This document shows, in pieces, positions 56,001-59,000 of a DNA stretch of 64,000 nucleotides. Source of the DNA: Macrostomum lignano. Lineage: Eukaryota. Position 1 is the first letter of the stretch, and every line of letters starts with the position of its first letter. The notes beneath the pieces are model-generated. The model was not told the DNA's origin, searched no databases, and was given only the letters and a program-made list of their open reading frames with translations. The translations under genes were made by a program, and so were the position numbers. The stretch is from contig NIVC01001675.1 of NCBI GenBank assembly GCA_002269645.1, positions 1 to 64,000 of the forward strand, given 5' to 3'.

Positions 56001-59000
56001 AGGGTGTCAGTGAGGGTGTCAGTGAGGGTGTCAGTGAGTGTGTCAGTGAGTGTGTCAGTGAGGGTGTCAGTGAGGGTGTCAGTGAGGGTGTCAGTAAGGC
56101 TGTCAGTGAGGGTGTCAGTGAGGGTGTCAGTGAGGGTGTCAGTGAGGGTGTCAGTGAGGGTGTCAGTGAGGATGTCAGTGAGGGTGTCAGTGAGTGTGTC
56201 AGTGAGGGTGTCAGTGTGGGTGTCAGTGAGGGTGTCAGTAAGGCTGTCAGTGAGGGTGTCAGTTAGTTGTCAGTGAGGGTGTCAATGAGGGTGTCAGTGA
56301 GGGTGTCAGTGAGGCTGTCAGTGAGGCTGTCAGCAAGGCCACACACCTGGCCACAAAGTACAGCGCATTGAGGATGTCGCCCCTGTGCACCAGGATGTCC
56401 CCGGGGGGCACGTGGGTGGACTTGAACTTGAGCGACAGAGTCCGCAGACAGCCGGGGCTGGCTTCCCTGAAGGCGGGGCAGTTCTTCAGCAAGTTGCGGT
56501 TCAGGTGAAGGCAGATGTCGGCCTGCAGGCACTCCGGGAAGCCCTTGAGCACCAGGTTCATGTCGATGCCGTTGGTGTAGGACCAGGCATGCTGGAAGTA
56601 CTCCTCCAGGCGCTGGCGCAGCGGGTTGGGGATCTGGTGGAAGCGGATGAACTCCCGCACCCTCAGCATCTGGGTGTGGTAGCGTGCGGTGCCGCTGTAC
56701 AGCCGCTACATCTGTCTGTCTGTCTGTCTGTCTGTCTGTCTGTCTGTCTGTCTGTCTGTCTGTCTGTCTGTCTGTCTGTCTGTCTGTCTGTCTGTCTGTC
56801 TGTCTGTCTGTCTGTCTTAGTGTCTGTCTGTTTTAGTTTCTGTTTGTCCGTCTCAATAGTTCAGCCCTTAATAGTTGTCTTCGAGCTGCTACAAGTATGA
56901 AAGTAGGAAAAGTACCCCAAGTTCCTAATGCTAAAGATGAAATGCTAAGATAACAATGTCAGTGCCAGTCATAAAATGAGTGTACATGAACACAGAATAT
57001 ATTCTGTATATTCTGTGGAATATGAATGAAAAAACTTGGCTGTTACCAATTCTCTGCCGAGCTGCAGATGGCAATCCACAAGTAATTAATTAAACAACCT
57101 CAGTGCTATCCGTGTCATAAATTACAGGTTAAGCTAGTTCAAAGCTCCCAGCACCCAAACCGCATTTTACCAGTTGCTATGGAGAGGGGATGGAGATAGT
57201 CATAAATCTGCGATCTCGATTCCTCCTTCGCGTACCAGTTGCTAAAAGGGCATCATCTGCTGCATTTTTGGCTTTCCAGGTATGAAGAAACCCTGTGCAG
57301 CTTTTCAATTTCTCGGATTTCTTAGAAAGTTAATCTGAAGACGTTTCTGAACCATCTGGTTTTATTTTAGCTTCAGCTAGTAGTCTGTTCGAGGGTGTCT
57401 GTCCGAGGGTGTCTGTCCGAGGGTGTCTGTCCGAGGGTGTCTGTCCGAGGGTGTCTGTCCGAGGGTGTCTGTCCGAGGGTGTCTGTCCGAGGGTGTCTGT
57501 CCGAGGGTGCCTGTCCGAGGGTGTCTGTCCGAGGGTGTCTGTCCGAGGGTGTCTGTCCGAGGGTGTCTGTTCGAGGGTGTCTTCCCGAGGGTGTCTGTCA
57601 CCGAGGTGTCATCCTCAGATGGCCTGACTCAGTTGACAGTCTCCATGGCCTGCCCTGCCAGCCCAGATCAAATATTCGCCGCCTCAACTGATTGGCCAGA
57701 GCGTCAAGCCAGCCAATCAGAACGCCAGGACGCTCCAGATTGCCGATGGCGTACCAGATACAGGCCAGCCAATGAGCGATCAGGGCGAAAGACGCCATGA
57801 GCAGCAGCAGCACAGCGGCTCCGTATTCCGAATACCGGTCGAGTTTGCGAGCAACTCGAACTAGTCGAAGTAGTCGAGCAGTTTTAAACAGGCCAATCAG
57901 AGTTGTCGTCTAAAATTGGTGACGTAACTAGGATAAGTGACGTAACTAGAATTAGTGACGTAACTAGAATTAGTGACGTAACTAGAATTAGTGACGTAAC
58001 TACAATTAGTGACGTAACTACAATTAGTGACGTAACTACAATTAGTGACGTAACTACAATTAGTGACGTAACTACAATTAGTGACGTAACTAGAATGACG
58101 TCATTGGAATTAGTGATGTATAATTAGTGACGTCACTGGAATAAGTGACATCACTGGAATTTGTGACGTCATTATAAGTTCCTAGAAAAAACGATGTTTA
58201 ATCACTATTGGACATTACTTGATTAAACGTTTAATGTTTAATCATTCTTGGAATTTCTCACCTCGTCAGACGTTGAGCCGGAGCCCCAGAGCAGCAGATC
58301 AAAGGGAATCGCCGCCACTACATCAATGAGGAACCAGCCTTTGAAATAGTGTACGGCTATGCGACCCGGATGCGAGACTACTTCGTCGTTTTTGTTCACG
58401 TAGGTGGTGCGAAAGTTGATCAGGATGTCCACGATGAACATGACGTCAACAAGGATGTCAATGACGGCCATGGGGTCTGTGTAGTCCACTGGGTGCTGGA
58501 ATTCAAAGGCGTATTCGTGCTGGTGTGTGGGGGGTTGCTATGGAAACCGGACTAGACTGGAAATACGGCTGAGACCAGGGAAAAAGCCACCGTTCGACAA
58601 GATCAGTAGCTCAAAACCGCAATTAGCTAAGATCAGTAGCTCAAAACCGGAATTAGCCAAGATCAGTAGCTAAGACAACAATTAGCCAAGATCAGTAGCT
58701 AAGACAACAATTAGCCAGATCAGTAAGCTAAGTCAACAATTAGCCAGATCAGTAAGCTAAGTCAACAATTAGCCAGATCAATAGCTAAAACAACAATTAG
58801 CCAAGATCAATAGCTAAGTCAACAATTAGCCAAGATCAATAGCTAAAACAACAATTAGCCAAGATCAATAGCTAAGACAACAATTAGCCAGATCAGTAAG
58901 CTAAGTCAACAATTAGCCAGATCAATAGCTAAAACAACAATTAGCCAAGATCAATAGCTAAGTCAACAATTAGCCAGATCAATAGCTAAGACAACAATTA

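Follow-up and report, generated by a model that had tools for sequence, protein, structure and literature searches.

A copy of an ERG-type potassium channel gene in Macrostomum lignano without turret, pore helix, selectivity filter and S6

The genomic stretch considered here (the window: 64,000 nucleotides of Macrostomum lignano, positions 1 to 64,000 of the forward strand of contig NIVC01001675.1, assembly GCA_002269645.1, containing no N) carries on its minus strand, at 53-61.5 kb, a multi-exon gene of the ERG or KCNH2-like type of potassium channel. The voltage sensor, S5, the C-linker and the cyclic nucleotide-binding homology domain (CNBHD) are encoded, and the segment between S5 and the C-linker, which in such channels holds the turret, the pore helix, the selectivity filter and S6, is absent. 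The lesion coincides with a break between a microsatellite and the middle of an exon, and it is accompanied by a changed splice donor at the other end of the same intron. We consider the gene to be, probably, a recently disabled duplicate in a neopolyploid genome.

The exons, all on the minus strand, were mapped by tblastn with three database relatives, P0123, P0121 and P0077. A 630-residue query joined from the window exons returned Macrostomum lignano proteins as its top matches, including full-length models that an earlier query of 279 amino acids had missed; the protein search apparently listed only relatives of about 0.67 to 1.75 times the query length. In the order of the gene, the first exon present is the last exon of the N-terminal PAS/eag domain (61377-61514; 100% identical in tblastn to P0123 and P0121; canonical AG acceptor, donor GTGAGA). 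It is the sole PAS exon in the window, the earlier ones lying beyond the window's end; in P0121, which is nearly identical, residues 40-130 match PAS_9, and the first 95 residues map outside the window. There follow a linker exon (60224-60766; found with all three relatives; donor AAG|GTACAT), the S1 exon (59847-59957; 100% identical to P0123 and P0121; donor AAG|GTGAGT), the S2-S3 exon (58262-58522; 99% identical to P0123; donor GAG|GTGAGA) and the S4-S5 exon (57688-57909; tblastn), which ends at the equivalent of hERG Q592 (hERG numbering by alignment to 8io4_A). Downstream of the break lies a truncated exon of 360 nucleotides (56346-56705), which encodes the C-linker and the first part of the CNBHD, ends in ALYFVAR and was delimited by comparison with a paralog's exon of 582 nucleotides. 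The rest of the CNBHD, ending in DYLLR, is encoded at 54311-54646 (tblastn to P0123 and P0121; splice sites checked; Pfam cNMP_binding, 43.5 bits), and a C-terminal exon lies at 53093-53323 (99% identical to P0123; donor GAG|GTGCAA). Apart from the truncated region, the exons are stop-free and 98-100% identical to ERG proteins of Macrostomum lignano in the databases, a level that by itself assigns the window to this species, and they are in keeping with the initial annotation, which had described them as open and highly conserved.

The encoded S1-S4 voltage sensor has a positively charged S4 (Pfam Ion_trans, 82 bits, profile positions 3-148), and the C-linker can be aligned to residues 665-784 of hERG. 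With hERG/KCNH2 (5VA1, 5VA2, 8IO4) the gene shares the arginine ladder of S4, S5, the C-linker (about 95% identical to that of hERG) and the CNBHD. When the window exons are completed with the pore of P0123, the resulting sequence from S4 to the CNBHD scores 486 bits against KCNH2, compared to 280 against KCNH1/EAG and 278 against KCNH5. Judged by its sequence, the gene is thus a member of the ERG subfamily (KCNH2/6/7, UNC-103, Seizure).

The hERG segment that has no equivalent in the window reaches from I593 to Q664. It takes in the turret, the pore helix, the SVGFG filter and S6, and with them the sites of Y652 and F656; in the gene this amounts to 73 codons or 219 nucleotides. The absence of pore helix, GFG filter and S6 had been proposed before from the sequence, with an overlooked GFG exon in a six-frame search as one outcome that would refute it, and it is confirmed. 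No pore motif was found by a six-frame regular-expression search of the whole 64-kb window, and a tblastn search of both strands of these 64 kb with 72 ERG pore/S6 peptides gave no match, its best E value of 0.16 being low-complexity noise. In Pfam, the Ion_trans match of the joined window exons ends at position 148 of the 241 profile positions and Ion_trans_2 is not found, while the intact relative P0123 covers positions 3-238 and also matches Ion_trans_2. A displaced or inverted pore exon elsewhere in the window was likewise considered, and is rejected by the motif search and the 72-peptide search on both strands. The reading frame after S5 runs into a TGA at 57600-57598, as had also been reported. 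As encoded in the window, the gene therefore fails the defining pore and filter feature of its subfamily, and is best filed as a disabled ERG gene copy.

The three closest relatives, all of which stem from the older ML2 proteome, illustrate both the intact and the pore-less state. P0123 (UPI0007A2055A, 776 amino acids), which is known as a protein model only, without its DNA, is a near-identical sister that, unlike the window gene, holds the pore, as 73 extra residues between ...ALANQ and RLYSG...; outside a stretch that is frameshifted in the ML2 model, it differs from the window exons at two residues (A/S and P/S). P0121 (A0A1I8INT5, 718 amino acids) and P0077 (A0A1I8FLK5), on the other hand, lack the pore at the same place as the window and, like it, jump from S5 to the C-linker. 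P0121 has S for A relative to the window, and P0077 is frameshifted relative to it, being riddled, unlike the window, with the frameshifts typical of the uncorrected ML2 assembly. Since both differ from the window, the pore-less state is not peculiar to one assembly run. The model P0121 joins ...ALANQ directly to MLRVREF, a junction for which a phase-0 GT donor is needed that is absent in the window (57688/56669); either the copy behind P0121 keeps this donor, or its model rests on an error in the ML2 sequence. The pore exon is also skipped in the ERG models P0001, P0004, P0007, P0010 and P0016, which come from sea cucumber, blackcap, Anopheles stephensi, Ciona savignyi and Solemya velum and in which S5 or the turret is joined directly to (A/S)... 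or to later sequence. In draft genomes, the loss of this exon recurs as a fault of annotation or assembly.

More distant paralogs, for which DNA is available, reveal the exon structure that preceded the break. The paralog P0125 (BOX15_Mlig000365g2) lies on the Mlig_3_7 contig NIVC01001631.1 (L001), whose DNA was retrieved, and its single exon at 18337-18918 (582 nucleotides) extends from the turret through the pore, S6 and the C-linker into the beginning of the CNBHD. A further locus (L002, BOX15_Mlig017281g1, protein P0349) is colinear with L001 over this region and keeps the pore as well; P0125 and P0349 are two copies of 98% identity, distinguished by an 11-residue indel. Both loci have the exon layout of the window gene, and in both the following intron holds the same 12-mer minisatellite, but unlike the window gene they possess the complete 582-nucleotide exon and a canonical donor, and their other exons are 69-92% identical to those of the window. 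Compared to this exon, the window retains the 3' part, and the acceptor and the first 219 nucleotides are gone.

The break itself can be read to the base on its exon side. The S4-S5 exon and the C-linker exon are separated by 982 bases, which consist of a 14-mer minisatellite (GTCTGTCCGAGGGT, 15.5 copies, 57383-57599; Tandem Repeats Finder), some 550 AT-rich bases of unique sequence and the microsatellite (TCTG)30 (56711-56831; Tandem Repeats Finder and reading of the sequence). The latter, which reads (AGAC)n in the sense of the gene, borders on the truncated exon, marks the deletion junction on its left side and stops six bases short of the first C-linker codon. It is followed by the hexamer ATGTAG (gene sense, minus strand, 56706-56711), which includes an in-frame TAG and leads directly to CGG, the first codon retained. 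In the blastn alignment of the window to L001, the homologous part begins precisely with window position 56707 (AG CGG CTG TAC...); upstream of this point L001 continues as pore-coding sequence, ...GCCATCATCC, and the window as ...(AGAC)n AGATGT. The sequence across the junction is ...GACAGATGTAGCGGCTGTACAGC..., continuing into the exon as ATGTAG|CGGCTGTAC, at a place where the undeleted, pore-containing form would read ...ATCATCCAGCGGCTGTAC... or ...ATCATCCAGCGGCTGTACAGC.... These comparisons support the initial annotation, in which (AGAC)n was seen to run straight into ATG TAG CGG and a deletion from a microsatellite into mid-exon was proposed: (AGAC)n-AG ATG TAG does precede the coding block at 56705, and in the paralog pore, S6 and C-linker do form a single exon, with homology beginning at 56707.

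The left side of the deletion is less well defined. The residual intron (57687-56706) showed no homology to the intron of the paralog except for low-complexity matches of a GTCT-type repeat on the opposite strand, which we judged uninformative because the same microsatellite is also present in the window at 32.1-32.5 kb and 39.1-40.2 kb. No DNA of the intact sister copy was on record when P0123 was looked up as an exact product, and lookups through two neighbouring HSP20 open reading frames gave no sister contigs on record either. Independent short-read contigs that contain the junction were sought with the window's open reading frame 56259-56669, with nothing on record, and a protein search with the full intact exon returned no Macrostomum lignano contigs from Logan, its best partial matches (93-98% identity) belonging to other animals.

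An absence that is seen in an assembly may also arise in the assembly. In such a case the animal would possess the full exon, and the pore segment would have been lost during the assembly or consensus of a repeat-rich region that exists in three near-identical copies. Assembly of this genome is indeed difficult: 15% of it consists of simple and tandem repeats, REAPR rates only 64% of the bases of Mlig_3_7 as error-free, and many blocks of two or four copies are misrepresented (PMC10733133, PMC5730564). Minisatellites fill every intron of the gene, ERG models without the pore exon are common in other drafts (see the five models above), and the agreement with ML2 rests on the same PacBio reads, from which both ML2 and Mlig_3_7 were assembled (PMC5730564). 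The assembly collapse that the initial annotation had listed first, however, is an unlikely mechanism for this junction, as it needs the same repeat on both sides, and on the right side (ATGTAG|CGGCTGTAC) the junction enters unique sequence from the middle of an exon, whose counterpart in L001 holds no (AGAC)n. Given this unique sequence on one side, the junction should be present in reads. Moreover, the window has no gap, two assemblers, that of ML2 and that of the window's source, both gave pore-less loci, and the two pore-less models differ in sequence. Finally, a collapse would not be expected to produce the independent G-to-T change in the donor of the same intron, which is described below. 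We thus regard an assembly artefact as improbable, though it is the most serious of the competing explanations.

The donor of the S4-S5 exon provides the second lesion. In a codon-aligned comparison, CAG at the exon end is followed in the window by TTGAGG (57682-57687, minus strand) and in L001 by GTGGGA, so that the invariant G of the donor has become T; at seven further splice donors of the gene that were checked, the canonical GT is present. Because this one donor is mutated while the other seven are canonical, the intron between the S4-S5 and the C-linker exons carries two independent lesions. The L001 exon ends ...GACCAG|GTGGGA, which is a phase-0 donor. In the window, the sole GT remaining at the donor lies one base upstream, as a weak CA|GTTGAG in phase 2, and the GTs downstream of S5, at 57689, 57638, 57629 and 57602, are all in phase 2, while the TAG|CGG acceptor needs phase 0. 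Splicing from CA|GT to TAG|CGG would shift the frame and meet a stop after about 14 codons. The phase conflict noted earlier between the visible donors and the C-linker exon is therefore present today, but the ancestral intron was of phase 0, not phase 2. Nor does direct splicing always cause a frameshift, as had been stated, for a cryptic AG 11 nucleotides inside the exon (CTGTACAG|C, exon start 56694) is compatible with a phase-2 donor and in principle allows an in-frame junction. The fit of this site with the GT created by the G-to-T change is probably a coincidence.

This cryptic junction is nevertheless the starting point for a different explanation, according to which the gene is transcribed, spliced in frame (e.g., from CA|GTTGAG to CTGTACAG|C) and translated into a functional, pore-less ERG-derived subunit. 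Its parts would be PAS, S1-S5, C-linker and CNBHD, and its effect would be to modulate or suppress the tetramers formed by the intact copies. In favour of such a subunit are the intact remaining exons, which are 98-100% identical to those of the intact sister, the frame-preserving cryptic acceptor in combination with nearby donors that are all in phase 2, and a pore-less state that may be common to two sequence variants (P0077-like and P0121). Other points speak against it. The copies are so nearly identical that the lack of further stops or other lesions elsewhere carries no weight, and one third of random donor-acceptor pairs would be in frame anyway; in addition, CA|GTTGAG is a poor match to the donor consensus, the acceptor has no pyrimidine tract, and the copy is known here from genomic sequence alone.

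Membrane topology also speaks against a functional subunit. In a six-span channel, S1-S5 without S6 is an odd number of spans and leaves the C-linker and the CNBHD on the wrong side of the membrane. As S5 is retained, there are five spans, the last of which ends facing outward, so that the CNBHD attached to it would come to lie in an extracellular or lumenal position according to the established topology. The gene does not match voltage-sensor-only proteins such as Hv1 and the voltage-sensing phosphatases either; these have four spans, no S5-S6 and a cytoplasmic effector after S4, whereas the window gene keeps S5. The pore-less regulatory subunit of the initial annotation is therefore disfavoured by both topology and splice-site lesions, and it is very improbable that pore-less copies are kept and expressed and co-assemble with, or titrate, intact ERG via the PAS and CNBHD interfaces. 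If they did, the genome would encode, in the pore-less copy, an ERG subunit of dominant-negative or regulatory function that arose right after genome duplication.

The explanation that fits best is a recent disabling of one duplicate, which had been named among three possibilities and agrees with the neopolyploid copies, the intact P0123 and the mutated donor. In a published self-alignment, some 70% of Mlig_3_7 fell into sets of three near-identical copies, and between the subgenome copies coding single-nucleotide divergence is 1.1% and indels amount to 5.5% of the coding length (PMC10733133). The three near-identical ERG sequences, one of them intact and two pore-less, fit this picture. The window gene would then be one near-identical subgenome copy of an ERG gene, in which a deletion would have taken away the last part of the intron together with the acceptor and 219 nucleotides from the start of the pore/C-linker exon, such that (TCTG)n now abuts the break, and in which the donor of the same intron has also lost its invariant G. 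Such a copy cannot make a conducting channel and would represent a young non-functional duplicate, an early case of gene loss after genome duplication, with channel function supplied by the sister copy with the complete pore (P0123, as a protein model) and by other ERG paralogs. Two features by which non-processed pseudogenes or null copies of duplicated genes are recognized are found at the locus, as a recognizable intron-bearing gene carries a disabling lesion (acceptor and 73 codons lost, donor G(+1) to T) and intact counterparts exist in the same genome (the protein model P0123, as well as P0125 and P0349). The absence of the pore, the exon structure, the breakpoint, the donor change and the existence of a nearly identical protein model with a pore are directly seen. 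We infer that the deletion lies in the DNA of the animal and not just in its assembled sequence, that the sisters represent subgenome copies and that the locus no longer functions; a real and recent deletion in one or two subgenome copies, leading to a non-functional duplicate, is the likely course of events.

Several points weigh against this conclusion. The junction is known from assembled sequence alone and not at the level of reads; the agreement of ML2 and Mlig_3_7 is not fully independent, given their common PacBio reads and the REAPR rating cited above (PMC5730564); and the left breakpoint is undefined, as the DNA of the sister copy was not retrieved. Outside the intron at the break no stop or frameshift occurs, which is expected for a very young pseudogene and also fits retained function, an in-frame cryptic junction does exist between the phase-2 donors and the acceptor CTGTACAG|C, and the copy is known here as genomic DNA only.

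The deletion may also not be a fixed difference between subgenomes, but a segregating or heterozygous allele in the sequenced culture. The DNA was obtained from pooled worms of the karyotypically variable line DV1, in which heterozygosity is reported to be retained between the large-chromosome variants (PMC10733133), but DV1 is also highly inbred. We consider this variant unlikely, somewhat more so than an assembly artefact, although it differs from a disabled subgenome copy in population status only, the mechanism being the same, and the present evidence cannot tell the two apart.

The retained C-linker exon is identical to L001 at 357 of 360 nucleotides (blastn), all three differences being synonymous, and the adjoining intron, which is filled by the 12-mer minisatellite (AGTGAGGGTGTC, 121 copies, 54896-56333; Tandem Repeats Finder), is about 90% alike to its counterpart in the paralog; exon and intron together correspond to L001 18559-19311. 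Next to the 69-92% identity of the other exons, this high identity beside the break looks like a gene-conversion tract that adjoins it.

The loss of duplicate genes after whole-genome duplication (fractionation) is already well known, and the window gene is a new instance of it. The pattern is the same, one copy being disabled by an indel while its sister is intact, and indels dominate the differences between the Macrostomum lignano subgenomes (PMC10733133); nothing is unusual in comparison except that the lesion removes exactly the ion-conducting module. For the channel field the observation carries little weight, as the animal has an intact, nearly identical copy as well as further ERG paralogs and is not without ERG channels. 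Its value lies rather in being a clean, base-resolved example of early duplicate decay in a neopolyploid, which combines a deletion at a microsatellite-bordered intron-exon edge, a donor hit in the same intron and an apparent gene-conversion tract beside the break. Annotators, and those who design knock-outs in Macrostomum lignano, may likewise take it as a practical warning, since an essential exon can be present in one copy of a gene and missing from another, and since gene predictors bridge such gaps with in-frame models, as A0A1I8INT5 does with its skip from ALANQ to MLRVREF, by which the lesion is hidden.

Tandem repeats are a general feature of this gene and its surroundings. Tandem Repeats Finder reports a long array in every ERG intron (54646-54887, 54896-56333, 56711-56831, 57383-57599, 57910-58169 and 58598-59828), with periods of 20, 12, 4, 14, 18 and 29 and up to 121 copies, and several of these arrays reach a splice site. 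Arrays that extend to the edges of exons may favour deletions that reach into the exons. The GTCT-type microsatellite at 56711-56831 recurs in the same strand orientation at 32.1-32.5 kb and at 39.06-40.2 kb, where it yields long spurious open reading frames, e.g., one of 376 amino acids of LSVC repeats at 39063-40193.

Elsewhere in the window, an open reading frame at 23104-23796 on the minus strand matches the p53 DNA-binding domain weakly (19 bits, under the Pfam cut-off of 27; E 0.0013) and may either belong to a gene of the p53 family as an exon or be noise. The neighbours of the channel gene include two small heat-shock proteins on the minus strand (41562-42089 and 42854-43246; Pfam HSP20, E 7e-9 and 9e-11) and, on the plus strand, a carnosine N-methyltransferase of at least two exons (15111-16691; Pfam CARME, E 5e-62 and 1.5e-36).

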